Assembly: GCA_003427395.1 (NCBI GenBank)
Contig: BFEA01000026.1
Location: 1,339,939 to 1,403,938 of the forward strand
Direction: 5' to 3'
DNA: 64,000 nt
From: Chara braunii
Lineage: Eukaryota; Plantae; Charophyceae
Shown: piece by piece, positions 18,725-60,203 of the stretch
Numbering within the stretch: position 1 is the stretch's first letter
Layout: each line of letters starts with the position of its first letter
Notes under the pieces: generated by a model
The model's database searches: none
What the model saw: the letters and a program-made list of their open reading frames with translations, nothing else
Told to the model about the DNA's origin: nothing
Translations under genes and position numbers: made by a program

Positions 18725-21700
18725 CTTCGGGGCGTCCGGTCGAATCAAATAGGGGCCGTTGCCAGAGCGTCCTTGAGGGTTGCAAAGGCCTGCTGGCATT
18801 CCGCGTCCCAGCTAAAAGGCTGGTCCTTCCGTAGCAAATTCGTTAGTGGTCGTGCAATCGCGGCAAAGCCCTTGATGAAGCGCCGGTAGTACGACGCCTG
18901 TCCCAAGAAGGCTCGAACCTGCATCAGTGACGTAGGAACCGGAGCTTCGTTCACCGCCGCAAGTTTTCTCGAAACTGGCCGCAATCCTCCACGTGTCACG
19001 ACATAGCCCAAGAACGAAATTTCCGAGAGGAAAAATTCGCTATTCTTAAGCGCAATCTTGAACCCAGCGTCTCTCAATGCACCCAATGTCCATTCGATGT
19101 GTTGCGCGTACCCGTGATAGGTTTCCGAATAGACCAGGATGTTGTCCATGTATACGATCACGCCGAAGTTGATCATTCTTTGCGTCAGCCGTGTCTTGCT
19201 GACGAAGTTCTGGAACGTCATGTTCATCGCTCGCTGAAACGTGGCAGGCGCATTGCAAATCCTCATCGGACACCGGAGCCACTGCCATGTGCCCTCAAAC
19301 AACACAAAGGCCGTTTTCGGCCGGTCTTCTTCCCTTACCAGAATATGATGGAAGCCATGCCGAATATCAAACTTGCTGAAATATTTAGCGCATCCAATCG
19401 CATCCAACAGATCATCAATCCGGGGGAGGGGATACACATCTTTGATTGTGATTTCATTCAGCTTGCGATAATCAATACAAATGCGAATCGCTCTGTTCTT
19501 CTTCGGTACTAACACTACGGGAAAGGACCAGGGTTCCAGTAGCGGGTTCAATCCAACCGCTGGCTTCGAACTCCCGAATTCGTTCGAGAGTCTTTTTGCG
19601 TTCAATCAAGGAATAGCGATAAGGTTTGCAATGAATCGGGGAGTGATTTCCTGTCTGAATTTCGTGTTGGATTACTAACGACAACCCAATGTCAGTGTCT
19701 GACACACTAATCGCTCCTTGATATTCCGTAAGAAATATCCGCAATTACCCGGTGGATTTCATCCGACACATATTGTGGAACGTGCAGTTCAAAGAGTTGG
19801 TCCCAGATCCGAACGTCAATCTGTTTCGTGTTCGCGTGTTTTGTCAAGTCGGGTGGAGGCGTCGAGATGAATGAATGATCCGATCGCCAGGAGAACACTG
19901 TGACCATCATCTGAGCATCTTCTTCTCAGATTGCCACGTGTCCTTTCGGGGTAATCCCGTCACAAACATCCTGCCATGGCACTTCCTTAGTTGCGATCTT
20001 TATCCCCAGTCCGTCGGTTTCCGTTTCAAAATGCCCCGGGGGTTCTAGAGAGCTTGCTTCCGTCCCTAAGCGTAATAATCACACTTCTTTAGCCGAGGTT
20101 AGTAAGGACTTGGGTAGATCCGTAATGTCACAGTAATGCTTCTTGTCGCTATACCGGGCGAGGAGAGGGGCGATTCCTTCGTACAAAGTTTGAGGGGGTT
20201 CCAAAGAATCAACCATCCTCGAAATCTGCACAAGGGAGCACCCAAGATCATCGCCTTGGTCCTTTGGATTTTTCGGCTGGTTAGTTGCATCGTTCTCGCT
20301 ATCGTTTTGGGTGGCGGGTAACAAACACGTTGTCGTGCTAATTTCAAGATCTTCGGATCATCCTCGTCACTGCTTTCCGCATCATCTGTTGATGACTCTC
20401 CTTCTGCGGATTTCTCCCAGGAGATCATGCGGAGAGTCCCTGCCATCATCGGCGAAACCCGCGGAACCGCGTTAATAGTAGTGCGAAGGGTCAATTGCAT
20501 AGGCACAACGTAGGGTTTTCCTCCTGTATTTTGGAGGACGATCGATCGTCGTTCGAAGTCCAGGTTTGCTCGTAACGCCACAAAGCGGGAAGTCCGAAGA
20601 GAACGTCGTACGTATTGACATCTAGTACTACGACATCCCCAAGCGCATGCACTTTACCCAATCGGAAAGCGACATTGGTCATTCTTCCCACGGTTTTAAT
20701 TCTTTCTTCGTCGGCCGAAATGAGTTGATCTTTCTCAGAAAGCGTGATCAAGTCGTTTTTCCTACCTGCCCTTTCGACCACTCTCAGTGAGATATCCAAT
20801 ACAGCCGCTCCTGAATCTATAATAGCATTGTAAGGAATTCCCCAAATTTCTATATCACACTCGGCGGATTTCCACGGAATTGGTTTAATCCGTAGGAAAT
20901 GATCATCTTTCTGGATTAAACCTACACGTATCGGATCCGAAGTACTTGCGGGGTTTTCTTCGGGCGCGGGGCTTTTGGCTTTTGCGTTCGGGGTTCGGCC
21001 AAGGGCGAATCGCTTTCTGTTCGCTTTGCAATGCTGTAACATTCGCTCGTTGGCTTGCTCGGAGATCGAGAGCAGATGACCAATCGGAAGGGGAATCCAA
21101 TGGTCCAAAGCTCGGATGATGTTTAATACATCGATCTCCCCTGTGACAAATGTGGGTCCTCCCGACTCCATTTCTCCTGGGGACAGTCGCCACTCCGCCA
21201 CCTCTTTTGGTTCTGGTGCTGGTCTAATTGTTCCGATCATTCCAAGCCCGGGATATCCCAGCGATACGTACTGATCTAGCGGGATTAGTTTGGCGGCCTC
21301 TTCCGAGGTAGCCAGGGCACTTCCCCCACCCTCTATTTCTTCCATCAGGGCTCCAACTCGTCCAGGTCCGTTGGCGATGGGGGCCGCAACCATAGGTGCG
21401 ACTCCGATCCGCTGTTGTGGGGGTCGGTGGGGGCAATCGTGGGCTAGATGTCCGGGCTGATGACAGGCGTAGCAGACATTCAGATTGTTCGCAGCTCCCC
21501 CTAGAGCAGGGGTCGGGGCTAATCCTTGCTGCATCGGAGGGGCACGCACCACAATGGGTCGCATGTTCCTCATCATGGCTTCCAGCCGAGCATTGTGCTC
21601 TCGCTGCTCCTTTTTGCTTTCTTGGATCAAACTAATCAAAGTTTTGGTTAGTTCGAAAATGGCCGCTGATTCGTTTGATCGTACCGGAACCTCAACCGGC

Positions 21701-22473
21701 GGCGGGGGTAATGCCCTGACAGGCGGGGGCATCATAGGAGCAGAGATGCTAGGAGTCTCACTTACGATTACTCGTTTGGGGCCTATCTGTTCCATATAGG
21801 TGACAGGTCCTGATAAAGACCCCATGTTTTCAAATTTGTTATGTAAAGCGGCCAGCTCTGCTCTTGCTCGAGAGAGCTCAGTCGAATCTCCGTCTCTAGG
21901 GTAATCTTCTCCTTCCAGGAAGTTCGCTGCGAACTTCCGTTCCATTTCTTCCGCAGCGGCCATAATTTGTTGTAGCGTATGGGTGATGGAGGGAAACTGC
22001 TTTCACAACTTAGCCCTTATTGTCCGGCTGCGAAGTCCGTCAATGAACAGATCTCTCCCTACTTGCTCACCTCGCTCAGTTTTTACGAACATTCTGTAGA
22101 ACCGATTTCGATATTCCGCGACGGATTCAAGCGGTTTTTGCACTCGGTCCTTGATCATGTACAACGCTTGCTCAGGGTGGACATAATCAAATTGGTTCAT
22201 AAAGTCCTGCTCGAAGGTCGGGAGATCCACCCATACATAGGTACTAAACCAACGATGAGCGTCTCTTCTCATTCGAGTCGGAATGTTGATCTGTGCTTCA
22301 TTGTCTGTGTACTGTTGGGCTCTAAGTGTGACCAGCCATGCTCCTGCGAGATGGTATGCGGGATCAAACAAATAGAGATCAGGTGGCGTCATGGGAGCTC
22401 GTGCACGTGGGGCAGGTTGATTTGGTGGGTTAGCAATTTGTTGCGGAACCGGGTTCTGCGCATTGGCAGCCAT
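18725..22473 (-). pseudogene. Gypsy gag-protease-RT polyprotein, truncated before RNase H
   Basis: Gag with an in-frame stop at 22003, zinc knuckle CYACHQPGHLAHDCP, protease AIIDSGA, and RT motifs CIDYRKLN, YPLPRIDDL, YMDN and FLGY. Confidence 0.95.
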
Positions 22474-22614
22474 ATTGGTTGCTCGCCGATTAGCCGATCT
22501 GCTTCGGGTGACGATAGGGTCGCGTCTATGCGCGTTCCGGGGGCGAGGTCGCCCACGGTTAGCCGGGTCGCCTAATTAACGTGCTATCAATCCTAAGACC
22601 CTAGCCACGTGTCG

Positions 22615-22627
22615 GGCTCCGATACCA
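22615..22627 (-). promoter_or_regulatory. Primer-binding site (tRNA-iMet)
   Basis: TGGTATCGGAGCC immediately after the 5' LTR. Confidence 0.9.
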
Positions 22628-26272: not shown

Positions 26273-27440
26273 TTTTTTTTTTTGTTGAAAACCGACTTCA
26301 GAGTACCAGACGGGGTGGTAGGAGCACCTCCTTCTGGTATCCTACAACCGGATGCTCCTATCTATTGGTGGGGAGCAGCACCTGCTGGAAAGTGGGTCCA
26401 ACTTCCCATATACAAAAAGCTTGGAAAAATATACCGGGGCCATTACCAGGCTTTGGCTGGGGAACACTCAGCCACATCGATATCACCCTGAGGCTCTCTG
26501 TCTTATGGGACTCTGGGGTCTCTCTTGTACAATTACCTGTTTTCCCCCGTGCTGGGTCCACGTTATACCAGTCTTTCCATTGCAGCCTTTCTGTGTGGAT
26601 GTCAGCCACCTTGCCTCAGATTTTCCTCAAGCTTGCTCGTTGTTGTTCAGAGCCAGGCCGGGGTAGATTTGAATAGCCTCCTTCACCCTTCTCTTGTCCA
26701 CTTGCACTGGATCTCTGCTTCTATCATGCCCTTTCAAATTGTTGCCGTCAATACTTTGTCGTGTGCGTGCGTTCTGTGTATTGTCGAGTGTCCTGTGGCA
26801 CCTTTCCTTCCATTATATTGTTTACAGTGTCGCTTTGTGAATCATTCCGAACCGTGTCCTCCCTAATTTGTCAAACTGCGAAGGGATGTCAGTCGAAAGA
26901 AGGACCAGGGAAAGTGGAGGAGAATAGATGGTCCCCTAGGTCCGAGGCTCTGGCCCACTGTGACTGTTCTGTGACCTCCTTACACCGGATCGCACAGTGG
27001 ATCAAGCCCCTTCGTTCTTGACCGGAACAAAATACGCATAGGTCCAAGCTGTTAGGGTCTCTGTTCTTTCTTCTGATGTGCAGCCAGTGATTGACGAGAA
27101 GCCGGGCAGCGTATGTGATTAAACCACCAGTACTTGGGCGACGCCTTAGCGTTAACGCTACGCGATTTCCGCGGCCGGCGGGCCGTCGATAAATCGAATC
27201 GACAGCCCGCGCTGCTTCGAGATTTGGGCGGCCGGCGCGGCGCGCAGTGCCCAAGTACTGGTGGTTTAACCATTGGAGACTTCTAACCTTGACCGTGCAA
27301 ATCATTTTGAATTTCTTCCATGGTATTTTGGAAATCTGTTTGGCTTCTTCCCCTGTTAGCCTTGTCCATCTGAGTTCAATAGCTGGTTCTGGGTCCTTTC
27401 TCTTGAGTAGCATCTTGAATCCCATTTTGATAGTTTTTGA
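26273..27440 (-). mobile_element. 5'-truncated LINE (zf-RVT C-terminus + tail motif + poly(A))
   Basis: VRSLQWL..LVNHWL..CVFC..HCAIRC, tail motif at 26354-26407, and poly(T) at 26273-26283. Confidence 0.85.
27123..27265. mobile_element. MITE (143 bp) with 17-bp perfect TIR and TTAA (or TA) TSD
   Basis: TTAA-ACCACCAGTACTTGGGC...GCCCAAGTACTGGTGGT-TTAA. Removing it restores LINE codons W-L-I-T-Y. Confidence 0.9.
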
Positions 27441-28865: not shown

Positions 28866-28990
28866 GTCCTTCGGGACATCCGTGAAAATCGGAACGATGC
28901 AGAGAAGATTAGCATGGCCCCTGTGCAAGGATGACATGCATAAATAGAGAAATGGTCCAATTTTATTGTTTTTGTAAACAAAAAAAAAAA
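28866..28990 (+). pseudogene. U6: U6 snRNA processed pseudogene
   Basis: Near-full plant-type U6 with ACAGAGA mutated to GCAGAGA, a poly(A) tail and an imperfect TSD AAGACTTACAC(TC)GATGT. Confidence 0.93.
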
Positions 28991-30645: not shown

Positions 30646-30901
30646 ACTGTAGCAGCTACGACCTTGACCCTTCAGGACTGTAGCAGCTACGACCTTGACC
30701 CTTCAGGACTGTAGCAGCTACGACCTTGACCCTTCAGGACNNNNNNNNNNNNNNNNNNNNNNNNNNNNNNTTGACCCTTCAGGACTGTAGCAGCTACGAC
30801 CTTGACCCTTCAGGACTGTAGCAGCTACGACCTTGACCCTTCAGGACTGTAGCAGCTACGACCTTCACCCTTCAGGACTGTAGCAGCTACGACCTTGACC
30901 T
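30646..30901. repeat. 31-bp minisatellite GACTGTAGCAGCTACGACCTTGACCCTTCAG
   Basis: At least 7 near-identical visible units across a small gap. Confidence 0.95.
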
Positions 30902-33693
30902 TTCGGAGAAGCTATAGCTACGACTTCTAGACTTTGCTAAGAATCCTACCCGACAGGTCTACAGATCGGACCCTTGCAACCTATGGACCCTACGACAGTC
31001 TACCAACTGTTACAAATATACACAGGTCACGGGTTCAACTCTCAGGGTCGACCAAATACTGTACACAGGTAAGGCGATGACTAGGGATCGAGCCCTGGGA
31101 TCTGCATCGGCTACTGCAAACAGGGAATACCGTTTCATTTGCCAAAATACCCCCATAAGTTGAGGTATATGTCAAAATGTCCCTGAAAATTGGGCGCTGG
31201 CCCTTAGCAATTGCACCCACGAAAAGTTGGCAACTACCAGGGTTACAGGGCACTTTGCAAAGTTGGACGGTGTCCGGTAGGGGTACATTGCAAAGATGGG
31301 GTCCAGCTGATGTCTGAGGTGTTTCACAAAACGTTTTTGGCGTCGTCCTTCGCTGCAGCGTAGCTGCGGCAGGTCCACTTGTATTACCCTAAAGCCTAAA
31401 GCAACCATGGCTTGAAGAGCAGACGCTTCGCTTCTAAATCCCATGAAGGCGCTTTTGCACATAGGAATTGGACTGTCTTATCAACTTGCTTGATAGATCA
31501 AAAGGATTGAGAAGATTCAAAACTCCTGTTTTTTGGGTTGGTTTTGGATTTTTGCAGAGTTCTACTGAGAAAAAAACAGATGAATAAGAGTTCTTTAAGG
31601 AAACCGATAACCAAGCCCTTGTAAACGACCAAGACCAGATGCTCAAATATTACAGCGATAACGACTAACTAAATATACACCAAAATTCTCCTTTGGGTCC
31701 TTCTACACAGGTGTATGTAGAAGAAGCTGGTACAGACACACACTTGGCTGGTCCTGGTTCAGATTCTCAGTGCTCTTTCACTGTCTGAGATATTACACTT
31801 GTTCTGTGAGCTTCAGTACACGGTTGCTACTGTCTTCGCCTGAAGACAACGCCCGGTCATTATAGCTGTATTTGGTGGAACTTTCAGTCCAGAAACGGCA
31901 ATAACTACTGGGTGTTCTATTCTGGTGAACATGAAGACGGTAGTTTATGGCTGAATGGAAATGTAGGCATCTCTTGCTCAATCAACTACAGAGCCTTGAC
32001 TCAGAGGAGCCCTGTGCTTTGCAATGCCAGTGAAATGATTCTGTGTATTCCTCGCTATGGCTGCATTTGCATCCATGTGCACAATCTTCTTCTTCTTCTT
32101 CTTTTCTGTTTTGTGTCCCCTTCCCATTCAAGGGTGTAGCCCTTAGGGCCTGAACATTTCTGAGCATATTCATTTGATTCCAAACTCATAATCTGTCTAC
32201 TGAAGTTGCATGTGTGTGCATTCAGCCACATGGTCTGGGTAGGGGCATTCTATCCTTGTACCTCTTTCCTGGATCTTTGTGTTCCTTTGCGCTCTTACTG
32301 TCTTCCCCCAAACAGAACATACGGTCAGTATCGCTGAGTCGAGACTGAAAGTTGTTCCAAGTAAAACTATAGTAACCATATGTTCTATTTGGGGGAAGAC
32401 GGTAGTTTATACTTTCCTTATACCCCTTTCCCGCATGCTTGTGTTCCCTTTTGGTCCTGCCTTCTTCACCCAAAAAGTTTGCCTGGTCAATATAGGTGTA
32501 TAGCCTTGTATTTGGGGCAATTTTCATTGAACACAGCTATAAGGACTGGGCATTCTACTCGGGAGCCAGAGCTTTGTAATGTACGGAACTGCACGCGTGC
32601 TTTTGCAATTCAGAGATGGTCAATGGTTGAATGTAGCCGTTCCTGCACATGCCCAGCTGTACCCGACAGTTTCAGGTGTGTACGGTCTGGCTTGGTGTGG
32701 ATGGGTCGGTATGGGCAGGTACTGTGATCAGGGGCATACGGCTGGCTGCCGTGTAAGTGTTTGGCTCGCGCCACCCAAACCCCCACCGAACTAGTCTTCT
32801 TCACTCTGCTGTGAACCCCAACCATGGTTACAATTTGAGTGGACGTTTATTTTTCGGAGATACCGAGCTCCAACTGGAAGAAAGGTAACGGGCCAGACCC
32901 CTTCTCTCGGCCCTAGGCTGCCCGAATCCTTGCAGTTCATCAATTGGCCATGTGGGAAAATTAACCATGAGCTTCAGCCAATTGTCACATTTCGGACTTA
33001 TGAAATGTGGCATGGCGGCCAAAGCACCTGTCCACATCTCTCCACCAGGTGGAGATCGCCACAACCGCCCTCTCCTCCTCTTCCCCCACCCAGGAGCAGC
33101 CATCACCGGACAGCGTGCAACAATCAAGTGGGGCCAGCACCACACACGATGCAGTAAGAGCAGGTACATGGGAGACTCTCACAGGGGTTACAGGTAGGGT
33201 GCATGGCTGTGACTACCCCTATGTAGAGATGCACGGATGTAGGTATGGGTACAGGTAAGAAGATATTCATCATGGGCACAGGGCAAGTACAGGTAACTGG
33301 TTTTCCGAGGTGCTTCCTGAGTCGGGTATAGGTAATTCTTCAGCCAAGCAGGAGTAGGCATGGGTGACGAAAGCCCGCATGGGCTGCGTGCGAGTGCTCA
33401 AAAAATGAGCAGATGATGTCCACTTTGCAGACATGGGTGTGGGTGCTTTCAACAAACCTACCCATGCAGAACCTCGTGCTTGACGAAGGCTTTGTGCATG
33501 ACATTGTGTACTGCCCACCTCTTTCTGAAGCAGTGGGCCAAATTGTATGCAGCACTGTCGCCCTACCTCTTCACTTAAAAAGAACTGCTGAAATCACTTA
33601 TCCATCCATCCATTACCTGCACGTCCTTGGCAGCTTTGCCACTAAATCATTCTTTCGCAATTCACTACGGTAACCTTAGGAGAAGGTGGAGCA

Positions 33694-33805
33694 GTCCTTT
33701 GGGACATCCGTCAAAATTGGAACGCCACAGAGAAGATTAGCATGGCCCCTGCGCAAGGATGACACACATAAATCGAGAAATGGTCTTAAAAAAAAGAAAA
33801 AAAAA
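33694..33805 (+). pseudogene. U6: U6 snRNA processed pseudogene
   Basis: U6 with intact ACAGAGA/AGC, an A-tail and a 14-bp TSD AGGAGAAGGTGGAG (33678-33691 / 33805-33818). Confidence 0.95.
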
Positions 33806-35423: not shown

Positions 35424-35690
35424 TAGCAGCGCTCTTTAACAACCTGCTCAGTTAATCCTCTGAAGCAAGAGTAATCAATGCTGGCAGGCTTTTTCAAATA
35501 CTTTCCTGTTTTTTTTTTCTGTTTTTCCCTGATTGTTTTCCGAATCATTCTGTGTAAGGGACATTGGACCCATTTTTCAGCAGGTGATGCTTCCCACCAA
35601 TAGATGGAGCCTCTCCCCAAGTGCTAGTGGTGTTTGCTTTTACCAGCACCACTAGCACCGGAGGGAGTCCTTTAAAATATATATATATCG
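35424..35690 (+). mobile_element. LINE tail: pseudoknot motif + 12-bp hairpin + A/(TA)n tail
   Basis: Motif at 35558-35610 and stem GTGCTAGTGGTG/CACCACTAGCAC. Confidence 0.8.
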
Positions 35691-35756
35691 TCAAATAGAA
35701 CTGCCCGGTAAACCGTAGGCAGAGAGGGAGAAGAGGACAACGAACGAGGGGCTGTG

Positions 35757-35816
35757 ACAAACTGTTTCGTCGGAGTTTCACCGACTCATCAGGAGGCTGA
35801 ACCCTCAACAGTCTGT
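35757..35816 (-). ncRNA. Type III hammerhead ribozyme, intact
   Basis: ACAGACTG-UU|GAGG-gttcag-CCTC-CUGAUGA-GTCGG-tgaaact-CCGAC-GAA-ACAGTTTGT, with full core and three stems. Predicted cut between 35807 and 35806. Confidence 0.9.
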
Positions 35817-36155
35817 AGAATCCCCTCACTGATTACANNNNNNNNNNNNNNNNNNNNNNNNNNNNNNNNNNNNNNNNNNNNNNNNNNNNNNNNNNNNNNN
35901 NNNNNNNNNNNNNNNNNNNNNNNNNNNNNNNNNNNNNNNNNNNNNNNNNNNNNNNNNNNNNNNNNNNNNNNNNNNNNNNNNNNNNNNNNNNNNNNNNNNN
36001 NNNNNNNNNNNNNNNNNNNNNNNNNNNNNNNNNNNNNNNNNNNNNNNNNNNNNNNNNNNNNNNNNNNNNNNNNNNNNNNNNNNNNNNNNNNNNNNNNNNN
36101 NNNNNNNNNNNNNNNNNNNNNNNNNNNNNNNNNNNNNNNNNNNNNNNGGGCTGTG

Positions 36156-36215
36156 ACAAACTGTTTCGTCGGAGTTTCACCGACTCATCAGGAGGCTGAA
36201 CCCTCAACAGTCTGT
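36156..36215 (-). ncRNA. Type III hammerhead ribozyme, identical second copy
   Basis: Identical to 35757-35816 and offset 399 nt across an N gap. May be an assembly duplication. Confidence 0.7.
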
Positions 36216-39200
36216 AGAATCCCCTCACTGATTACACTGTAAGTGATAATCCACCTTAACCAAAATCAAAGTAGACTATCACTCAGCCATGACTAATAAT
36301 TTTTGATTTGAGAGACTGTGCAGGTTCCGCAGCCACGGCCAGTGTGATCAAGACAACACAACGACAGTAACTCCGCAACATCCACAAGGCAACAAACGAG
36401 AGGCAAGTACACAAGGGCAACCAGCATCACACAATCAAACAGCCAATGGTTAGCTGTTGCTAATCCCGCTGTCTGCCTGCAGATGCCTGTGTGACCAAAC
36501 AGATGCCCTGGCACGTGGCACTACAGCATAGTCTGATGCTGTACCGCCCGCCAGGCTGGACATGTGCAAGGTATTCCACTTCAGCCCAACCTTGCTTTCC
36601 TCGCAATACGTCACTCGAGAGACTATGTGGTCTACGGAAGCAGTACTATGAGTGACACATCAGCAAGACATACTGCCACATCAACACCACATTGGCTCCA
36701 CAAAGCCAAGTGCTACATCAGCAAACTTGTGCCACATCAGCTCGTCATGGCCCTCCAGAGGCCATGTCAGATACGGGTCCCGCCGGATCACGTCAACTCT
36801 GGCTGCCACTTGGAACCGTAACCTCTGCTTCTTGCAGCGGATTATCAATGGGAAGGCGCCACGTCACTGTAGATGCTTCGCTGCTCCTCCCGGGACATTG
36901 TCGTGTTGCAGGAGATACCTCGCTGGCCTTCTATGGGCAATGCCACGTCAGCAAGTGTACCTCGCTCTCTCTGCTTGAGAGTGCGATGTCAGCACCTTTG
37001 CATGGCTTCTTGCCAGAAAAGGAGAAATACAATGGCAATATGCCTGCCACATCAGCAGGCAGCTGCCAATACCAGAACCACACTGATGTTCACGTCGACA
37101 TCTGCAACTTCTCTGCACTGGCGCCATTTCAGCAGCTGGTGTCGACGGTAAGTATTCTCCCTCCTCCCCTCCACGTCAGCACTTCCCTTCACACAAGTCT
37201 CTCGCTGACCAGTGCCACGTCAGCAAATCTCTCGCCAACTGGCACTGGTCTCTCCTTGTCGGCCGATAATAAAGCAGCGATATAATAGACAATGCCGCTC
37301 TTCTTCTTCGCGGCCGACTCTTCAACAACTCGTCATCATCTTCATCAATGTCATAGCCAGCAGGTGACGAAGTAGGAGGATTATGCTCTGATACCAAATT
37401 GTAATGAACCCAGTCCGATGAGAAGCTCAAACATACCGTGATGCATCTGATTCAGCGCAATAATGCTGTCTCCAAAAATCGATTATATGTCCAAGTCAAA
37501 GTACACGAAATCTCTCATTATCCCGTAACCCAAAGAAGAGAATGAGAATCGAGGGGTGGAGAGTGACGCGCTAACGCTGAACCGGTGAGCGCCTCCACAA
37601 TGCGCTAAGCCCGTCCACGAACCGTCGCGGCAACTCACTTCCCGCGGGAAACCGCCACGCGCACGGCTCCGCGCGCGTTTGTCATCCAAATTTGAATCCG
37701 CCAAGGTGGTAGGCTAGGGGGAGATCGAGCGACGACACGTCACGCCACGCCTCCGGGCGTGGCCACCCTAGGCGAGGAAACGGGCCGTTGAGGACAAGGA
37801 AGAAAGAGGGAGAAGGAGGAGAAGGAGGAGAAAAAGAACAAGAACTCCAGGGAAGGAGGGGGAGAAGGGGAGAAGAAGGAGAAAGGAAGTCCCCGGAAGA
37901 AGAAAAGACAAAGGAAGCAAGAAAGGCGACGAAAAGTGGGTGGTGCACAAATCTTACCTACAATAGGAGAAGGGCAAGCAAAGAGGGTACGCGCAAGGAA
38001 TCATCACAAGCGGACAGAGATAGAGGCGCACCAGCCATTGCCGCACCATTAAGTATCCCAAGGTTTGAGCTGGCCCTAAACCCCAAAGGTAAGATCAAAC
38101 GACCTGTCCACCGACCCCTTCGTACGCAAGGGGCACAAGGAAGAAGGCATCACGACAAGCGAAAGGACAACACTCAAGAGGAGAGGAACGACGGATCTTC
38201 GAACTACGGAACAAGGGGAATAAAGACGACGACGCTACTACTTCGGGATAACACTATTTTAGGAACGTAGACACGACACAAAATCCCGCGTTCCGGCGGC
38301 AGTAACCCTTTCCCAAAGCACGATAGGATCAGGACAAAGCATCAGCCCGGACAAAGCATCAGCCCAAACACCAGGGGGAAAAATAGGAGTCGAAGTCGGC
38401 CATCATTAGAAACAGGATTACAGTAGCCAACACTATCACCTAGGCCGAAGCTCCTCTTCTCGCCCCTACTCATCTCCAACCCGCTGAAAGAAACGAAGCC
38501 TAGGTGGACTCTAACCCAAAGGTAGCCGGAACACGCGGTCCCGCCCACCCCCTAACGCTCGCCCTCGCTCGCCTCCACCAACCTCCACTTTCCCCCTCAC
38601 CTCAAGGACAGCCTAACACTCACGTTTTCCGCACTGCCCACCCGTGCACTCTGCCCACATCAATCCGTCGGCTTCCATCCCGCTCCCACTCCCTCCTTTC
38701 TCCGTTTGCCATCCCATCACCACCCATCGGATCTTGAGAGTCCTGTTAGGTCCACACAAGTAGAGGGAGACCAAAAATTTTCGGTTACTCACTCAAGTTT
38801 CCCTCCTACTTACCTTTCTTTTATTTTTTTACGGATCGCTTTGACATGTCATCAATCTGAACATAGCACGTGGGTTTAGGTTACTTATTTATCTACTTAC
38901 CTTAATTATTATTTTTATTAATTAACACGTAATAGTTGGTCTTAGTTGTCATTCGAGCTCTTATTAATCCGCTCTTCGCCCACACCGCCACAACAGACGT
39001 CCCAATCCAATTGATCAGGGGTTGGGTACTTCGAAGAAAACCTACCCCATGTACCTTCTCTTCCGACCCCGGACCACCATCCCATCCATGCTATCGCCCC
39101 TCTACCTCCGCCCAAACCAACACCCCCCAACCACACCCTCCCTCCCCGCCCACCATCCTCCCCCGTATACCTCTCGATCAATCTCGGTACGCCACGATCC

Positions 39201-39269
39201 GGTACAAGTCCCGACCCCCACCCCTGACCGGCAAAGCTACCCCCCCCCCCCCTACCGATTTGTTGGAGG

Positions 39270-42070
39270 ATGGCGATCTCTTACCTCCAAGCGGCCAGGA
39301 AGGCACTGTCGCAACAGGATCTAGCCCAAGCAGATTCCAATTCAAGCCCAGGGAACCCGACAGCTCAAACGACAAAGAACTCAACCCATTCGGCTGCCCA
39401 AGGAACACAGAGAACCACAACAACATACAAATCGTTGGGACAAAGGGCGTTAGCCTTTCTGATGAGCAAGACAGAGATTAAGGCGGAGATAACTAAAACA
39501 AAAGAAACAATCAAAGATGGAAATGGCCAGGAAGTTGAAGTCGAAGTGTGGGAGTACCCCAAGCAGGATCTACAATCCCTCAATGAAGTTTACGAAAAGC
39601 ATGTGGCGCTCTTCAATTTCACGAACAAAAACAGGTATTTACCTCTGAACGAAAAGAGGAAATGGGTGATGGACAAGCTCAGGGAAATGGAAAGCATACC
39701 TGGCACAGATCCGGACGTCTCTTACCACAAAAGAGGTAGGTACACAGTCATGATTCTGTGCGTCGATCCCTCTTATGCCCAATTCTTGATTTCCCTAGGT
39801 TCACTGAAGTGCAAAGGCTCGGTAGTCACAATCCAGAGATGGAAACCTCCCAGGGAACCTCAGGCGGAAGCTTCCAGACATAGGCAGACGATGCTCCGAA
39901 ACCACTTCTGGGTGCAGTTTGACAACCTGTCTGAAGGAATGCACAACTTCATCAAGAAAAGGTTGCAGGAGGAATTTCCCAACAACCTCATCATAGACTG
40001 GCTACCAGCCAACCCGGACTTCATGGCACCCAACCATGACTCGAGAGTGGCATACCTCGAGGTATCCTCAGGCACGACGTTGAATTTCCCAGACATGTGG
40101 ATCTTCCGGAAGAATGGCAAGGGCATCACAATCTTCATCTCCACCAAAGCGACCCCTACTGTTTTCGCTGCAGAAAAAAAGGACACTTGGGCATGCACTG
40201 CCCGCAAATGGGAGAAAAGGGAAGAAAGACAGTTCTCCGACAATTATTATTTGTTGAATGCGACGTTAAACCAGGGGTATGGTACATCAACGATGCTCAG
40301 TTCAGGGGCTGGATTTTCAACGATAACCTCAAAAATCCCAAGTGGATTTGGGTCCTGCAGGGGGAACCCAAGTTCAAACCGGACATCTACCCCCCCTACG
40401 ACAGCAGATGGAGGTTTGTAGGAGCCAAGCGAATGGAAGGCAGAAACACAGGTTTCCACATGGAACAGGTAATCTACGAAGCAGGACTGCACGATGAAAA
40501 GCAAAGACTGGAATCAATGAAGTAAATGCACGAAATTGGGCCGAACACGGAGAAGGCCTACCTGGAAAATCTAAGGGCCAGAACAGTCCAGGAACCGCAG
40601 TCGGATTCAGTGTGCTCTACCCTAAAATCCGCAGCTTCCAAAACTAGAGAAGAGGATAGCCTCCATATCGACGGATCTCTGAAGCGCGAACCCGAAGAAT
40701 TAGAAAGGGAAACATATACTAGCGCTACGGGGAAAAGAAAACAACAGTCGGTAGGACTGGCAAGTGCCCTACCAGCAGATATGGAAACGGATGGAAGTGA
40801 ACATTCCAAGCAATCCAACAATGTGCAGGGAGAAGGCAGAGTGCTGCCAAATGTCAAAACAACAACAATCAGGGAGGATTCTTCCCAGCGCGACAAAGCG
40901 GCAGGCCTGGAAGAAGGGGAGGAGGACATGGACTGCTCCCTAACCCCAGGAAGGGGTAGAAAAAGGGATAGAGCAGAGGAAAACGCATCCCAGTCCTCCA
41001 AGGAAGAAGGTGAAAAACAGTCTGAAAAGGACGACGAGGGATCAAATGATGAGTGGAAGGAGGACGACGAGGGATCAGATGATGAGTGGAATGAGGACGA
41101 CGCGGATATGAAGGAGGATGACGAGGATTCCTTGGAATACGTACATCAGTACGTCAGATCGCTGGAGAGGGCAAGGACAGTGGAATTCGAAGTAAGACTG
41201 ACCCATCACAAACACCGCCGAAATCTCAGAGCAGTGACGACAGCGGCCAATGACATATGCACGAAAAATAGGTTTGAGTTGCCGGAGACGGAAAGGGAGA
41301 TCAATGGATTTTATGCAGCACAATTCGGGCTGAAAACGAAGGTAGAAAATGATGAAATCCAAGTGGATCTAAGCAGCTATGCACAACACTTCGAATGGTC
41401 CAAATCCTACGAGGAGAAATACGCAGAAAAGAGAGTCAAAAAGCAAAGGAACACAACAGGTAACTCAAAGACAGAGGAACAAACGGATCAGACCACATCG
41501 GACTCAGAATCGGTGGATGAACTCAACAGACAGACAACCATTCTCGAAGCACAGGTCAATGCCCTGCGGGATCAGAACAGGGAATTAGATGAGAACTGTC
41601 TAAATCTCAAAGACATTGCCACAGGGTACAACAGGGAAATAGAGGCAGCGGCCAGACTCGACACTCGTTCCAATCCCAAACGGCGTACAATAATCCCGTA
41701 CAGATGGAACAACAAATACGAAACCTGGGAAATTGCATACCATAAATCCATGGCCCTGCTAACAGTCATAGACCAGGACTGTACGCAACAACACCTAAAA
41801 GAGAGGATATCTGATGCAGTCCTATCTAGAGCGCACATTCTGGGAACCAAGAAGGAAGCAAGAGAAGAATGGAAGGACCAGGAGGGCAGTTTGATGTGGG
41901 CAGATCTCAGACCCATGATTCTATAACTTGAGGAAAAGGCAACTCTTAACGACGACCTGTGTTGGGTTCCATGGCAGGTAGTGGAAGCAATACCCTATGG
42001 ACTGCTAGGGGGGAACTGAGTCGCAGAAAGAGCAGCCTTCAGCCGCTCGTTAGTCACAGCGTATGGCATT
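39270..42070 (+). pseudogene. LINE ORF1 (possible RRM-like region, CCHC knuckle, acidic/coiled-coil C-terminal half)
   Basis: CFRCRKKGHLGMHCP (~40157-40203) after a frameshift. In-frame stops at 40523 and 41924. Confidence 0.8.
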
Positions 42071-42450
42071 TTCCAGATGTCACCTAGGCAGCTTGGAATG
42101 AAGTTGATGGGGTCAATTTCAACTGGGAGGGACATAGGCCCTACTAGCTCTTAAACGGCGCTGGTAGCATGGGAATAGTCACGGGATCAAGTTGACTGGG
42201 ACAATGGGGGACTCCAACAGGAGCGTGCAAGCACCCCCCATACACATAAAGTTTGGTCTCCGCAAAAGAGAACCGAATCTGAAGATTATCTCGTGGAATG
42301 TAAACGACATATCCTCACTCCTCAGTAATCAAAGCAAGTGGGATAACATAACAAAGGCCTTCAATTGGTTTGGCAGGTCACCCCCGGACATACTATGCAT
42401 TCAGGAAACTCACTTGACGCAATCACAGGAGCACAGAAAACACAGAACCA

Positions 42451-42644
42451 GATAATTAAAAAACTCCAATGGGTGAAAGAAGCGATCACAGATTACACAA
42501 TTATAAATGTTGAGGGACGTTGGACCCGATTTACAGCAGGTATTGCTCCCCACCAATAGATGGAGCCTCCCCGAGCACGTTAGTGGTGTCTGCTCTTATC
42601 AGCACCCCTAACATCCACTCGGGTTGTTTTCTCCAAAAAAAAAA
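42451..42644 (+). mobile_element. Short LINE tail inserted in the endonuclease domain
   Basis: Tail motif at 42514-42566, hairpin and A run interrupt the APE between QETH and SAGVVILL. Confidence 0.8.
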
Positions 42645-44825
42645 GAACAACAAAGAAGCGATATGGGCCCCTTCTCATCTTCCTCACTCTGCAGGAGTGG
42701 TCATACTGCTACATGCCAAAGCCAGGACTACTTGTAGGATACCTATACAATCAGCAGACATTGACATCACGGAAGGAAGATGGGCGAGCATAAAATTTCA
42801 ATTCCTAGAAGACCAATTTCAAATCCTCTCCATCTACTGCCCTAACACATTACCTCAAAGAAGGGAGTTAATCGATCAACTAGCCCCAAAATGTGACCCC
42901 CATAGGCACCTACTCCTAGCAGGTGATTGGAATACTGCGCTTGACCCAACAATGGACCGCCTCTCGGGAGGGAGCTCCCTAACAGAGAATGCAGCATGGA
43001 GCGAAGCACTCCCCATCCACGACATAATGACGGAAAAGAATCTACTAGATCCGTACAGGGCCATATACCCAGACAGTAAAAAAATCACATATCTAAAAAG
43101 GAATAAAAGTCAACACATCTCGGCCTCCAGAATAGACTATTTCCTAATTTTAGAATCACTGTTAGGATCAGTACACAGCCTAGCAATAAAGGGTCTACCC
43201 CTCTACCCGGGCCTAGACCACAAACCCATCACACTTAATCTCAACATAGGAAACAACCCAGGTGGAGGGAATTTTTTTTTTTTAATTAACAACTCGATCC
43301 TCAACACACTTGAAATTAGGGAGGCAGTATTAAGAACGTGTATGGACCACGACCTCACCAACCTAGACTTCCCTGAGATGGTCACAACACTATCCGAAGC
43401 CACAGCAAAAGCATCAAGGATACTGGCTAGTAAAAGAAAACTACGGGAAGATGAGTTTCAACATATCATAAAACTAGCAGAAAGCAACCTCATCTTCCAC
43501 CCACGTTCTTCCCTTTACGAGAGAGCACTGGAGCAAGCCAGGCACGAAATGGCCAAATGGGAAGAGTGGAGGAGCAAAGGTCTGAGAATGGGAGCAAGCG
43601 TGAAAGAATGGGAGGAAGGAGAAAGAATGACCAAGTACTTCTTTCACAAAATTCAATCTAATGCCAACAATGCAAGCATCAACCAACTACAAACTGACCA
43701 GGGTTTTTTCTTCAGATCCACAGTTAATGCTGACAACGGCAACAACTTTCTTCAAGAACCTCTATACCTCAAAGGAACAAGATTTCTCTCAGCAAGAAAC
43801 AACACAGGCCAAAAACAAATTTCTCACGTACCTGGATAAAACAATCACAACGAAACAGGCCACAACTTTGGACGCCCCAATCACAGAACAAGAGCTATTT
43901 GAAGCCCTGCATTCCATGAAGCCCAACAAAACACCTGGAATTGATGGTCTGTCCAAGGAATTCTGGTTAGCATTATGGCCAGTGTTGGGCTCGGGATTCT
44001 TCCAATTCCTCGGGAAAGCCTGGGAGAAAGACACATTGGGGAACAATTAAGTACAGGAGTCGTCTCCCTCCTATATAAGAAGGGGACCCAACGGACATAA
44101 GGAACTATAGGCCACTATCCCTACTCAATGTGACATATAAAATCCTAGCGAAACTGTTAGCTAACAGAATAAGAACAATAACAAGGAATTGCTTTCATCT
44201 GGACCAAACCTGCTTCATTCCAGGATGGTTCATACTAGACAATGTATTGACTCTAACGGAAACTGTCAGATACATACAGGACAAAAGGATGAATGTCGCC
44301 ATCTTGTTCTTCAATTTCGAGAGAGCCTACGATCAAGTGAATTGGAATTTCCTATAGCAAAGCATGGAAAAAATGGGCGTGGGACCCAACTTCAGGAAGT
44401 GGGTGAAGATCCTCTATGCTCATGCCCATGGAAGAGTCCAAGTCAATGACCACATATCACAACCTTACCGAATGTCACGTTCAGTACGCCAAGGGGACCC
44501 GTTAGCAGCCCCAATTTTCCTGTTCATTATTGAAACCATTGCGTCCTTCCTAAGGAAAGAGACCTCAATAGAAAGACTATTGGAGGATAACCAACACTCA
44601 CCGTACGTCCCAACCACAATCCTCTTCGTGGATGACTTGACTGTCCTGATAAGGTATTCTGACTCCTCGTTCGAAGTGCTAACCTGGGCAATGCAAGCAT
44701 TCCAAATTGCCTCCGAAATGAAAATCGACTGGTCCAAAACTATAGGATGGTGGCTAACAGATCCCCAAGTCAATACCCCCCAAAATACACTAGAAGGAAT
44801 GAATTGGGCTAAAGGCAACGACCCC

Positions 44826-49421: not shown

Positions 49422-49662
49422 ATACCTTTCTCGGCATTTCGGCTAAGATCAAGTGTAGTATACTAGCATCTGTTCTGGTCAGTTTAATATCTGATCCGTG
49501 GGCCATCGGGCCACAAGATGTTAAATCATTTTTTCTGGGCTGCAGAGGGGTCAGAGGGGTAGGCTTGTCTACTCGACGCCTCCAGTGTCACCTTCGTATT
49601 GCACTGCAGCGAAGTGTGGCACGGCCCTCCCCCTTCTGGGGAAATTAAAAAAAAAAAAAAAA
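49422..49662 (+). pseudogene. U2: U2 snRNA processed pseudogene, full length
   Basis: ATACCTTTCTCGGC..GGCTAAGATCAAGTGTAGTA, stems IIa/IIb, Sm-site-like ATTTTTT, loop IV ATTGCAC, then poly(A). Confidence 0.92.
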
Positions 49663-50186: not shown

Positions 50187-53100
50187 TGTAATGAAGCCTC
50201 CAGATTCTCAGTGGACTGTACATTGGGTCGAGGGCGAAGCTTTGCCTCGGTCGGGTCGCGTCTTAGGTTAGATTCGTAATTTTGTTTGGCTGAGGGCTAA
50301 CAGCGACAGCTGACTGTAAGGAAATTCGTGAGGGATATATCTGCAAATTTGGGAAAATTATAGGCCCGCACTAACTGAATTCCCTACAGCTACCCTAACT
50401 GCGTATGGCAGGCCGGGGCTACCCCTAGGATGGACAGGCCCTAAGGGCCTACGCCAATAGACGGTCCTATAGCCTATAGCCGGGTAGGGAGAGGCGGAGA
50501 GGTCGAAACGAAAAACGGTACCGGTCAGTCCTATCAGTCCGGTCTAGTTCGTGTCTAGGCTAGGGTAGACTATAGATAGGATGGGCACATCGGTTCAGGG
50601 CTTTTGGCGGTTGGTACCGAGTACATCGCTGCTGTGCAACGCGTGAACCGGAAGTGGTGACGGCTCAGCGTTGAGGGAGATAGACATAGCCAGACCTGCG
50701 GAGTGCCAGCCATATCTGGGACCTGCGCTATACTCCATCAGCACACAGGGCTGTACAGAGGTCTGGGCTATTCGAGGTCAGGAGAGGCGGCGCTGCTGCA
50801 GACTTCATCCCGGGAAGTCATTCGACACTTCGTCATCATCAGACACTGTGGCGCTGGTCTTCTTCTTCATCCTCTGGGTGGCGCTTCGCCTCAGAGGCTT
50901 GTTTCAGGGTGGCGCTTCCCTCTGGAGCCTGTATCTGGCTGGCGCTTGACGTTTCAGGGACTCAGGGGTAGTAATAGCGGTTCATCAGGGTTGGGGAGTG
51001 AAGCGCTGCTCATCTCTGACCAGCGCATCATAGTTCTGAGGTTATCCTTACAATTCGAGACCCTGAGTTTAATAAACACTGTTGATACTGGGTTCAAACT
51101 ATAATCGTTTCATTGTTTCTTGGATGTGATCTACTCAGCTTTCCTTTATGACTGGTTGTGAGGATTGAGCGGAGTGAATTGCACTTTCATTGTACCGTGT
51201 CATATCGCATGGTCAAGTCTTCCGTTGTTCCTGTGCGGTGTGATACTTCTATCATCTCCCCTTCCTTTTGTGTATGTATGGGCATACCTGGAAGTCTATG
51301 TGAGTGAGTATTGGTTTTTTAGACAACAGACAACCTGAATCATAACAGTTGGTATCGGAGCGATTGGATCCAGACTCTGGAGCGATTGATGAGTTGGAGC
51401 AACCACCATCATCTGGCGAGACTCTGGAGTTGAGTTTCATGGCGATTTGTCATCTTCAGGGTTTGCGACAGTGAGGGTGGTGGTGGTGAGTGTGTGGCGA
51501 GAGGAATTGGACAGAGGGTGACACACTCCTGTCCAAGGTTTTACAGGAGTGGTTGGTGATTGGTGCTCAAAAGCCTAGGAGGCTCTCAGAGGCTACTTTT
51601 AGCGTGGCGGTTCATCTGGAGACTGGCGATTGGCAAAGAAGGGATCCCCGGGTGTTGCAATTTTGGAATCGGGTCAGGATCCCCAATTTCCAAGCAGCGC
51701 AGTACAAGGTGCAGTGGCGCTGCACTGAGTTTCTCAGTTATCAGCATTTGGGACTCCGAATTCAGTGTTTCTGTCAGTTGGGGTTGAAGCGCCTCAGGGT
51801 AACCTGCTGGATCACCAAGTTTCAGGAAGTTTGGTACGTGGGAGCACTGGGAATGATCAGGGAATGAAACTGGCCAGATGGGGTTGAGCAGACAACCATA
51901 GCCAGAGTTTCACTCATCTTCTTCAGAGATAACCCTGAAGTAAGTGTGTTCCTTACTCTATTCTGTGTGGCGATTCTGAGACTATTTTCAGATTAGTGAA
52001 ATATGGTTTGTAATTCAGTCGACAATTGAAAATCGAAATTCAGACAGTGGGACAGCCACAACTAACTTTCCCTACCTATCTTCTTTGACTTCTATTAACC
52101 CTGTTTGACCTCCTTCCTGACTCAACTTTCATCTGGGACTGCTTTACAGTGTTGCGATTCATCCTGTACTGTGAATTGAGTTGTTCAGGGTCCCGTTGTC
52201 AGTGATAAAGCAAATTTGAATTTTGCGCTGCCATAGCTGAAGCTTGGCTAGACTAGGGTCAGTCACAACTTCAGTTCTGTCCGTCAGAATTCAATTTTGT
52301 CAGTCCCTGGTAAATCGCAATTCAGTGTACAGCCTGCATGTGAAATCGCATAATCAGATTTGAGGTTCAGAGTTAGTTACAGTGATTTATGTAATTCGCC
52401 ATGCCCTGGGTATGGCATACAGGGTCATACAATGGTGAAGTCTGTAGGGTAGGTCTAAAAATAGGATTACCTATAAATCGCTGCACCTTGGTCATCAGTG
52501 GACACCTGCCTATCCCTAATTAGTCACTCTGTCTAATTGTTAATCAACACTAATCAGTCCAGGACTGCATCCTGCAAGTTTTTGGTGTAGGATTTGCAAT
52601 TATTGCATGAAATTGTCGTGTCAGGGCAGTGATTGGAAAATCGTGAAATGGATTTTTGTTGAGCTCACTCTAAACTGACCCTGACCCTCAAGCAGTCTGC
52701 AGAGATTGAGCACTCACTTGCTCAGACTGACCAACTTTCTCTCTCCAGGCAGGTGATTGCAATTGAGTAAGTACTGAAGAGAAAACTCAATTCCCATTAC
52801 CTCATGTTCTGTCGTCTGTTTTATTGTTTTATTATTTATCTGAATTGTGGAAATGACGGATGTTGAGAAGGGAGAGGCTTCTGAGGTGAAGCCTGAAATT
52901 CTGCCTGACCCTTTAGAGGCTGAACTGCGTGCCCAGGAGGAGAAACTCCGCCAACAGGCACAGGCAGTTAAGGCTCTAAAGCCTTAGCTAAAAAGAAAAG
53001 AAGCAGCAGCTCAGAAGGAGGCTAGGAGAAAATTGATGGTTGCAGATATCGAGAAGATCAGGGTGTGTGGTAGTTCCAGCCAATACAATAAGGACATGGT

Positions 53101-57203: not shown

Positions 57204-57251
<48 letters not shown>
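57009..57251. repeat. (CT)n/(CA)n microsatellite spanning a gap
   Basis: Seen directly. Confidence 0.95.
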
Positions 57252-57253
<2 letters not shown>

Positions 57254-58880
57254 ATCAGTTTTCTGTCTGTTAGTCTTTTTCCTGTTGTTTGTCCTCCCTC
57301 TAATTTTTTCTGAGTATTTTTCTCTGTGCCCAACTGAGCACCCTTAAGTAGTGCCAAACAGTCGGTGGTTCCTCGTTTGGAGTGCCAACTGCACTCTTAG
57401 GGGGGGCGCTCGGTTCGGGATGTCTGTGTTGCCTATGGGTGATGACGGATGCTCGTCGGAGTGTCTCCCTGGCTCAGTGGGTGGTGGGAACCAACAGTCT
57501 GCGGGGTTCACCTGTGATGTGAGTAGGTGATGTGCTGCTTTGCTCCGTGTTGGATGTGTGGACGACCCCGTCTGCGCTCCACCACTGCCTTGCTGCCCGT
57601 TCCTCTTGCCTCGCAGGTCGTTCTTGGCATGCTGCTGTCTTCGCTGTGTGGAGTGGCCAGGTTGTGGTGTTGCCTTGTGCTTCGCTGCTTCGTTGCCTTG
57701 CCGCCCGTCCGTTGGTCGTGCCTTTTGGGTTCTTTGCTTGTGCGCCCTGTAGTTTGGTTGCTGTGTTGGGGTTGCCTTGTGCTCCTCAGCATGGTCGCTC
57801 TGCTGGTTGTCCGCTTGCGCTCTCGTCCCTTGCAGTGTGGTTGTCTTGGTAGTGTTGCCTGACGCTTCACTGCTTGGGTGCCCTGCTGCGAGTTCGGCGT
57901 GTACCGTGTTGCTCCTTGCAGTTGTTTTTGGCGTTGTGCAGCCATGTTGCCTCTACTGCGCTGCCTGGTGCTCCACAGGGTTGCTGCCCGCTACTATGTT
58001 CCGCTTGGGTCCTTTGCTTGTGCGCCCTGTAGTTTGGTTGCCATGTTGGGGTTGCCTTGTGCTCCTCAGCATGGTCGCTCTGTTGCTTGTCTGCTTGCCC
58101 TCTCGTCCCTTGCAGTGTGGTTGTCTTGGCAGTGTTGCCTGGTGCTTCACTGCTTAGGTGTCCTGCTGCGAGTTCGGCATGCTGTGTCGTTCCTTGTAGT
58201 CGTTTTTGGTGTTGTGCAGTCGTGTTGCCTCTACTGCGCTGCCTGGTGCTCCGCAGGGTTGGTGCCCGCGGCTATGTTCTGCTTGGGGACAGTCTGCCTT
58301 CAACAAGGGTCAAAGGGTTCATGACCCAAACCATCATATACGGAGATTCCGCAGATTGTGGAGGGTTCAGCCTCCTGATGAGTCGGTGCAACTCTGACGA
58401 AGCAATCTTTCATCAATTTTTTTTTCTCATTTTTTTTTTTCCAGTCGTTGTCTGTTTTATACTTGTTTTTTTTGTGCTGTTTTTGCATGGTTGTTGTTTG
58501 GCTGGCTGCTGTTTCCCTTGCTGCCTTATGTTGTTTGCTTGCCCATTCGTCTACCCCATACCTTTCACCCAGTGTGCTTTGTTGTTTTGTGCTGTTTGCC
58601 TTGTGTCGTTTGTTTGCCCACCCGCCTCCCCCGTGCCCTCCATCCTGTGTCCCTTGTTGCGGCTTGTCGTTCTATGCCTTACTGGTTGTGTCTTGTGTGC
58701 CCTCGACCTTTCAGGCTTGGGATTGTATATTTTTTCTATCTTCTGTATGCCTAGTGGACTTGCAGTGCTACTTTAAGGGTTGTCTATTGACCTGACTCAC
58801 TCAGATGCGTGTTTCCTCCTGAAGTATTGTGTCAGTACGGGGCACAGTATCTGTGCCGGAGATGTTCGCCATGTGTCTTT
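57252..58880 (+). mobile_element. ORF-less hammerhead-bearing element, copy 1 (flanked by CA repeats)
   Basis: Homologous to the reverse complement of 58975-60203, G/T-rich and A-poor, with a ~280-bp internal duplication (57726-58285) and an HHR at 58353-58408. Confidence 0.75.
58353..58408 (+). ncRNA. Type III hammerhead ribozyme, degenerate
   Basis: Same family as 35757. CUGAUGA is intact, but the core reads GAAG instead of GAAA and the cleavage triplet is GUG. Confidence 0.8.
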
Positions 58881-58974
58881 GCACACACATCAACACACAC
58901 ACACACAGGCATGCCAACATACGAGCGGACCACGGACCTCATGGACACATCACGGCAGGAGCTCAGATTGACAG

Positions 58975-60203
58975 TTGGGAGAGAAAGAGTGAGTTGAGAG
59001 GATAGGCAAACAAAAGGCAATGAGGCAAAGGACAAGAGGCAACAAGACAATAGCGACAAGCCGCAGCAAGGGACATAGGCTGGAGGGCAGGCAGGAGGAC
59101 GGTGGACAGACAAACAGCACAACACAGTGAAGGAAAGAGACATAAAGGCTGGAGGGTATGGGGCAGGCGGATGGGCAAACAAACAACATAAGGCCATGAA
59201 GAAAATGGAGATGAGCCAAAAGGTAACAAGGCAAGCAAAGGAGACTACAACAAGCCAAGAAGCAGTCTTGGACAGTCAAAAAGAAGCAAAGAACATAGGC
59301 TGGAGGGCATGGGTGAAGCAGTGGGCAGACAAACAGCACTAGGCAGCAAAGGAAAAAGCAACAAGTCACGAAGCAGCAAGGCAGACAAAAAGAGCAAGAA
59401 CCAAAAACCACAAAGCGAAAAAAATAAAACTGATGATAGGTTGTTTCGTCGGAGTTGCATCAGGAGGCTGAACCCTCGACAATCTGCGGAATCCCCATAT
59501 TGATGCTTTGGGTGATGAACCCTTTAACCCTTGTTGAAAGCAAACTGTCCACAAGTGGAACACAGCAGCAAGCAACAACTCAGTGAAGCACCAGGCAACG
59601 CTTCCGGAGCAACCCAACTGCACAACACCAAAAACAAACTGCATGAATGACAACGCAGGCGGACGAGCAGCCCGGCAACAGTGCAGCGAAGCACAAGGCA
59701 ACACCAACAAAGCAGCCAAACTACACAGCACACAAGCAAAGAATGTGAAAGGCACGCCATGTGGATGGGCGGCAAGGCAACAGCACAGTGAAGCACGAGG
59801 CAACACAAACACCACAGCCACATCACACAGTGAACACAGCAGCTGCAAAGAACGACATGTGAAGCAAGCAGGACAGCAGCAAGGCAGCAGCAGAGCGCAG
59901 GCAAGGCCATCTACACATCCAACATGGAGCAAAGCGGCAAATCACCTACTCACATCACAAGTGACCCCCGAAGACTGTTGGTTCCCACCACCTGCTGAGC
60001 CAGGGAGTCACTCGGACGGACGTCTGTCATCACCCATAGACCATATGCACCTCAGACATCACAGACCGACCAGCCTCCCTAAGAGTCCTGCAGGCACTCC
60101 AAAAACCGACCACATACTGTTTAGCACTTCTTAAAGGTGCTCACTCAGACAGAAAGCATTAGAAAAGTTCAAGAAAGAACAAATACACACAGACAACTGA
60201 TTG
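58975..60203 (-). mobile_element. ORF-less hammerhead-bearing element, copy 2 (inverted)
   Basis: Diverged inverted homolog of copy 1 that begins beside (TG)n at ~60204. Confidence 0.75.
59439..59485 (-). ncRNA. Type III hammerhead ribozyme, 8-nt deletion
   Basis: GUC triplet and GAAA are intact, but AGTCGGTG is missing after CUGAUG. Confidence 0.75.

Follow-up and report, generated by a model that had tools for sequence, protein, structure and literature searches.

A type III hammerhead ribozyme at the edges of an assembly gap in Chara braunii: probably one copy of a microsatellite-associated element, with proposed mobilisation by Penelope-like retroelements

Background

In plant retrozymes, hammerhead ribozymes reside in long terminal repeats (LTRs) of 300-400 bp that are accompanied by a primer binding site (PBS), a polypurine tract (PPT) and 4-bp target-site duplications (TSDs) (Cervera, Urbina and de la Pena 2016, PMC4918200). 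Such canonical retrozymes seem to be mostly restricted to dicots (de la Pena and Cervera 2017, PMC5680766). The animal hammerhead satellites or non-LTR retrozymes known from newt, Schistosoma and cave cricket carry type I ribozymes, which have a weak stem III and work in dimeric form (PMC4918200). The hammerheads of Penelope-like elements, including those of Selaginella, were found to be minimal or of type I (Cervera and de la Pena 2014, PMC4209133). Here, we study a type III hammerhead within 64,000 nt of the genome of the alga Chara braunii (assembly GCA_003427395.1, BFEA01000026.1, positions 1,339,939 to 1,403,938), in the following referred to as the window. An earlier note, made from the sequence alone, had described the locus as a possible retrozyme or circular-RNA unit with two ribozymes 399 nt apart. 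All coordinates refer to the window, with the strand given in brackets.

The closest described systems stem from the same host. Three kinds of Chlamys Penelope-like elements are reported from C. braunii, two of them with canonical hammerheads, one at the 3' end (Craig et al. 2021, PMC8557442); Chlamys-2_cBra has such a canonical 3' hammerhead (Craig et al. 2021, PMC8557442). Chlamys elements show an insertion bias towards microsatellites, are frequently truncated at the 5' end and form partial tandems, i.e., structures that trouble short-read assemblies, and in Chlamydomonas non-autonomous derivatives share their 3' ends with autonomous elements (all PMC8557442).

Results

The window contains a genuine and well-preserved type III hammerhead that is, judged by core and fold, apparently intact. 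It is found at both edges of an assembly gap, and the coincidence of the repeated sequence with the contig ends suggests to us, with a probability of about 55%, that one ribozyme copy has been written twice.

The hammerhead domain of the left contig spans 35746-35827 (-), from its outer GAGGGG/CCCCUC helix inward. The Rfam model RF00008 (Hammerhead_3) matches on the minus strand at both gap edges (35759-35814 and 36158-36213; 45.8 bits, E 1.2e-8 on 1 kb), and the family model R1 scores the left domain with 101 bits. Direct reading and the cmscan alignment show a core of CUGAUGA and GAAA with C3-A9, G12-A14 and A15.1:U16.1 all present and U at position 17; the cleavage-site triplet is GUU. Stem I (4 bp) carries a 6-nt loop and stem II (5 bp) a 7-nt loop. 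With stems I and II closed by loops and only stem III open, the ribozyme is of type III. Stem III has 9 bp (8 pairs, plus A15.1:U16.1; one pair is G:U) and is extended by the outer helix beyond a 5x5 internal loop. Both the minimum free energy (MFE) and the centroid fold of 35746-35830 (-) form the hammerhead three-way junction (-34.4 kcal/mol, z -3.3), and the core pattern has 3 matches in the window compared to 0.07 expected. From direct reading, the cut is predicted 3' of U17, between 35807 and 35806. On type, perfect core and strand, on the 9-bp stem III extended by GAGGGG/CCCCTC, and on the position of the cut, the earlier note is confirmed. We infer that the ribozyme is able to cleave itself.

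The note had also listed complementary loops 1 (UUCA) and 2 (UGAA). This is correct for the present copy, in which loop-loop kissing is possible, but a conserved kissing contact gains no support from the three related copies compared: in these loop 2 reads UGCA, with loop 1 unchanged.

We now turn to the duplication. The 89-nt block at 35749-35837 (-; repeat family D2) is, as stated in the note, 100% identical to the one at 36148-36236 (-) across a gap of 310 N (35838-36147), the length of which is only an estimate. The first block is precisely the terminal 89 bases of the left contig and the second precisely the initial 89 bases of the right contig, i.e., the blocks form an exact suffix/prefix overlap, through which the two contigs join seamlessly. 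Identity past 89 nt is impossible because both contigs end there. It is thus the contig ends that set the bounds of the repeat, and the spacing of 399 nt is the sum of 89 and an estimated number. The right block, scored by R1 with 99 bits at 36145-36226, represents a second hammerhead or a repetition of the first; the 3' strand of its outer helix is cut off by the gap after CCC. As a result, the reported presence of two ribozymes 399 nt apart is not established, and the caveat of the note that the duplication may be a contig-overlap artefact becomes the key point: at both contigs, repeat and contig end at the very same base. The label 'young' had been based on the identity of the blocks, which is uninformative if a single sequence was written twice.

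Left-contig ends were compared with right-contig starts across each of the nine N runs that the window contains. An overlap of the flanks was seen at a single further gap (30741-30770; 77 nt), which lies inside a 31-nt tandem array. The other gaps sit at copies of a short interspersed nuclear element (SINE)-like retroposon and at microsatellites. Contigs in this region therefore tend to break at repeats. The array itself extends over 30646-30924 and is interrupted by the 30-N gap.

Next, we consider what surrounds the ribozyme. On the right contig, 3 nt upstream of the block, lies a 21-bp hairpin with several G:U pairs (36239-36288, -). Its minus-strand fold has an energy of -25.3 kcal/mol (z -6.6; 0/200 shuffles as good), compared to -8.0 kcal/mol (z -1.9) for the plus strand. 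Since several of its pairs are G:U, the hairpin is stable only as minus-strand RNA. On the left contig, the ribozyme is followed by a 60-nt tail (35689-35748, -) that holds a small hairpin and whose first ~12 nt lengthen the outer helix of stem III, as seen in the minus-strand fold of 35690-35837. Given the strand-specific upstream hairpin and the outer helix that continues into the tail, both flanks look like parts of one RNA. Merged through the overlap, this RNA of 208 nt folds with -74.6 kcal/mol (z -5.0 with respect to mononucleotide shuffles).

The tail ends at an (AT)6 tract (35677-35688) 60 nt past the block, which is the (TA)n tract that had been noted beside the unit. By direct reading and comparison of SINE copies, the element has its 3' end here when read on the ribozyme strand. 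The merged element is thus most likely, as far as the folds can tell, ~205 nt long and composed of the 21-bp hairpin, the hammerhead with its extended stem III and the 60-nt tail, followed by (AT)6. No minus-strand open reading frame (ORF) of at least 150 aa was found in 36237-44465, and Pfam gave no match for the smaller ORFs nearby.

Beyond the (AT)6 tract, and outside the ribozyme element, the neighbour is a SINE-like retroposon of ~120 nt (35558-35676, +) with at least 10 copies in the window. The (AT)6 tract occupies the place of its poly(A) tail: complete copies elsewhere end in poly(A), and this one has TTTAAAA(TA)n instead. No SINE TSD that would bracket the insertion was detected, i.e., no shared 7-mer was found. 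The family shows a conserved 5' core (GGGACGCTGGACCC...CCACCAATAGATGGAG), then a variable hairpin and a poly(A) tail, and several copies are located at contig ends. Beside the neighbour, copies are found at 8840-8960 (-), 42513-42613 (+), 12893-12993 (+) and 26351-26428 (-), with further ones at 5454-5507 (-), 7804-7864 (-), 4464-4516 (+), 3954-3994 (+) and 7184-7224 (-).

The ribozyme has relatives both within the window and in public data. Core pattern, blastn and a family covariance model identify two more hammerhead loci at 58340-58421 (+) and 59425-59498 (-). They belong to an inverted, tail-to-tail pair of ~1.4-1.45-kb elements (57204-60246), each of which starts at (CA)n and holds its ribozyme mid-unit; one of the two carries an internal 280-nt duplication. 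Both ribozymes are dead: one has a GUG site and a GAAG core, the other lacks 8 nt of core and stem II. An intact hammerhead of this (CA)n family with a GUA site (37.1 bits) is found on the public contig BFBZ01011546.1 (1534 nt), the ends of which are identical over 86 nt. This terminal redundancy implies a 1448-nt unit that is circular or repeated head to tail. Searches of metagenome contigs gave 0 matches, then 1, namely this contig, and searches of viral contigs gave 0 matches. A covariance model built from the four sequences and run with filters off found no copies in the window beyond the four blocks.

Only ~71 nt are shared between the (CA)n-family ribozymes and the present one (77-86% identity; 77-85% for the two loci of the window). 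We detected no homology of the flanks, i.e., Smith-Waterman scores are within those of shuffled sequences and blastn with word size 7 returned nothing. The shared part (35755-35825) makes up nearly the whole 89-nt block. This is in accordance with expectation, since contigs that stop at a conserved module would give just such a block. Among the four distinct ribozymes compared, the present one has the highest Rfam score (45.8 vs. 37.1, 21.2 and 18.9 bits). Stem I is invariant across all four, and stem III shows covariation at one pair (C:G here vs. U:A in the three relatives). Position 17 is U here and G, C and A in the three others; in one relative, a C precedes G at this site, such that the GUU triplet may have arisen by a CpG transition, as far as so few copies can indicate.

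The remaining observations concern other parts of the window. Seven CTGAYGTGGCA motifs (G-box/ACGT-like) are clustered within 570 nt at 36653-37223 (-); the whole window holds 10 compared to 2.3 expected. Three small nuclear RNA genes lie within 21 kb, i.e., two U6 and one U2 (28866-28966 (+), 33694-33794 (+) and 49422-49629 (+)), with the second U6 lacking a terminal T run; they confirm that the DNA is eukaryotic. A Gypsy-type element at 18745-22627 (-) has two ORFs, one for a reverse transcriptase and one with a zinc knuckle. For the reverse transcriptase, the 31 best matches show 80-90% identity and are all C. braunii proteins, in agreement with the host. The PBS variant TGGTATCGGAGC is found at 22616-22627 (-) and, after ...AACA, at 51350-51361 (+).

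Discussion

Three layouts fit the assembled sequence: one copy with overlapping contigs, two copies that share only the block, and two distant copies that were misjoined. We favour the first. Here, contig assembly would have stopped at both edges of a high-copy ribozyme module, and the scaffolder would have separated two truly overlapping contigs by a gap of estimated size.

Several observations weigh against this interpretation or against the ribozyme behind it. The scaffolder estimate is +310 nt rather than an overlap, and a true 89-nt overlap would imply an error of ~400 nt. Contigs would stop precisely at the two block edges as well if a spacer lay between two blocks with a flank on either side. 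Where flanks overlap at the one other gap (30741-30770), the tandem repeat is real, and the sister (CA)n family is arranged head-to-tail, as seen from the 86-nt terminal redundancy. Furthermore, with one copy of the (TA)n subfamily, the limits of the element and its tie to an autonomous Penelope-like element can only be proposed. Concerning the ribozyme, its 45.8 bits are 2.7 below the curated Rfam gathering score of 48.5, and the hammerhead is for this reason unlisted in a default gathering-mode Rfam scan. Finally, GUC is commoner than GUU, which is a slower site in minimal hammerheads.

The strongest competitor to a single copy, which we nevertheless regard as rather doubtful, is a real pair, i.e., two identical 89-nt ribozyme modules that flank ~310 nt of unread spacer. 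Double self-cleavage would then release a ~399-nt monomer with ends fit for ligation into a circular RNA. The locus would be either an LTR-free, retrozyme-like unit or a cDNA that was copied from a circle past one unit length. The positive gap estimate speaks for a true spacer, and contig breaks at both block edges are predicted and seen. In addition, both Penelope-like elements and the sister (CA)n family typically show partial tandems and head-to-tail copies, and in animals and plants hammerheads are known to be spaced by repeats of 150-400 bp and 400-1000 bp (PMC4918200). Against tandem units stands the layout of the flanks, as the right contig lacks the 60-nt tail after its block and the left contig lacks the hairpin. 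For the same reason the data fit poorly with a longer unit that is simply dimerised head to tail, in which the block would lead into the tail on the right contig and into the upstream hairpin on the left one. Moreover, the outer helix needs bases outside the block, such that a functional second copy implies a repeat longer than the one observed. The two outer junctions, which can be read directly, show no TSD flanking the block-to-block unit, and 100% identity confined exactly to contig ends is what classically betrays a duplication at gap edges. In its most elaborate form, the pair would be a ~399-nt non-LTR 'retrozyme' with two identical, monomer-active type III hammerheads, whose copies a Penelope-like enzyme would make at (TA)n and which would yield small circular RNAs; this we hold to be unlikely.

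A scaffold misjoin is improbable. Mate pairs mapped into the repeat would have brought together contigs from two separate genomic copies of the family, and the ribozymes would not be adjacent. The dispersal of the family, with three distinct ribozyme loci in 64 kb, and the termination of both contigs in a common module are compatible with such an error, but the flanks fit together as one structured RNA and nothing in the window indicates a join of unrelated regions.

We also considered a canonical plant-type LTR retrozyme, with the block opening the 3' LTR. An exact 12-mer of a tRNA-Met PBS (TGGTATCAGAGC) is found 1148 nt upstream on the ribozyme strand (37385-37396, -), for which we estimate ~0.008 exact matches per window by chance (4.65 when allowing for up to 2 mismatches). 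The termini agree as well: ...ATTACA precedes the PBS and the block begins with the inverse TGTAAT. On the other hand, there is no hammerhead in 36237-39500, such that the 2.1 kb upstream of the PBS are free of one and the PBS does not follow a ribozyme-bearing 5' LTR. According to blastn, 37300-39400 recurs nowhere else in the window, hence an LTR pair is missing; at 38422, where the 5' LTR would start, only 7 nt agree with the block, and the sole ribozyme-bearing repeat is the 89 nt equal to the contig ends. Neither a PPT before the block, where purines are not enriched, nor a TSD was found. ARAGORN reports no tRNA gene in the window from which the PBS sequence could stem. Most likely, the PBS belongs to an unrelated, incomplete LTR element. 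Beside it lies a candidate LTR (37400-38422, -) with no partner LTR in the window. With LTR pair, PPT and 4-bp TSD all missing from the assembled sequence, the canonical retrozyme can be dismissed as very improbable. The retrozyme or circular-RNA unit proposed in the note, which would need two ribozymes in one transcript, is not supported either.

Given a single copy, the element is most likely a representative of the hammerhead-carrying, microsatellite-associated retroelements of C. braunii. The link to hammerhead-carrying retroelements drawn in the earlier note agrees with the Chlamys elements published from this species. The element shares with them (Chlamys-2_cBra, PLE-X type) the host, a hammerhead near the 3' end and a microsatellite terminus, and 5'-truncated and partial tandem copies would be expected of such elements. 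It differs in that an autonomous Chlamys copy has a GIY-YIG/reverse transcriptase ORF, and neither is present on the ribozyme strand within several kb. We propose mobilisation in trans by a Chlamys-type Penelope-like reverse transcriptase/endonuclease. Insertion into a microsatellite without a clear TSD, with (AT)6 at the 3' end, is consistent with this but a weak feature alone, and the apparent tandem that could be taken for a pseudo-LTR arrangement matches a gap-edge duplication equally well. Penelope-like hammerheads elsewhere are of type I or minimal and dimeric (PMC4209133), in contrast to the type III ribozyme found here.

With plant retrozymes, the locus has in common the type III hammerhead, a non-coding and structured RNA, the occurrence in the green lineage and possibly a ribozyme pair a few hundred nt apart. 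Instead of 300-400-bp LTRs with PBS, PPT and 4-bp TSD, the present element ends at (AT)6 and has neither PPT nor TSD. The animal hammerhead repeats are similar in being short non-coding units of 150-400 bp with compact, stable RNA folds and no PBS or PPT; their ribozymes are dimeric and of type I, whereas the long stem III predicted here should allow for action as a monomer. The (CA)n elements (57204-60246 and BFBZ01011546.1) share the ~71-nt ribozyme module with one compensatory change in stem III, but have unrelated flanks, a unit of ~1.45 kb and an anchor in (CA)n instead of (TA)n.

A possible course of mobilisation can be sketched from these features. The element would be transcribed on the minus strand, and the hammerhead would fold as a monomer, because its stem III is long, and cut the transcript after U17 (35807|35806). 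Cleavage would trim upstream read-through RNA and leave a 5'-OH end. The 3' (UA)n end of the RNA could then pair with a nicked (TA)n target and prime reverse transcription, such that a Chlamys-type enzyme would copy the RNA into DNA. The present copy retains sequence upstream of the cut site; its template would therefore have been uncut, multimeric or circular.

If there is one copy, the locus is a further member of a hammerhead repeat family that has already been reported at the level of Chara Penelope-like elements. It is unusually well preserved and, as the best-scoring core-intact one of four distinct copies, a good template for a cleavage assay. At the same time, it is a warning that gap-edge duplicates can mimic tandem ribozyme units. 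Should there instead be a true pair, a streptophyte alga, i.e., a member of a lineage that split off before land plants, would hold a compact candidate for a non-LTR retrozyme that produces circular RNA. Ribozymes of the plant and viroid style would be connected by it with Penelope-like retroelements, and the locus would then bear on the proposal of de la Pena and Cervera that retrozymes and viroid-like RNAs descend from Penelope-like elements.

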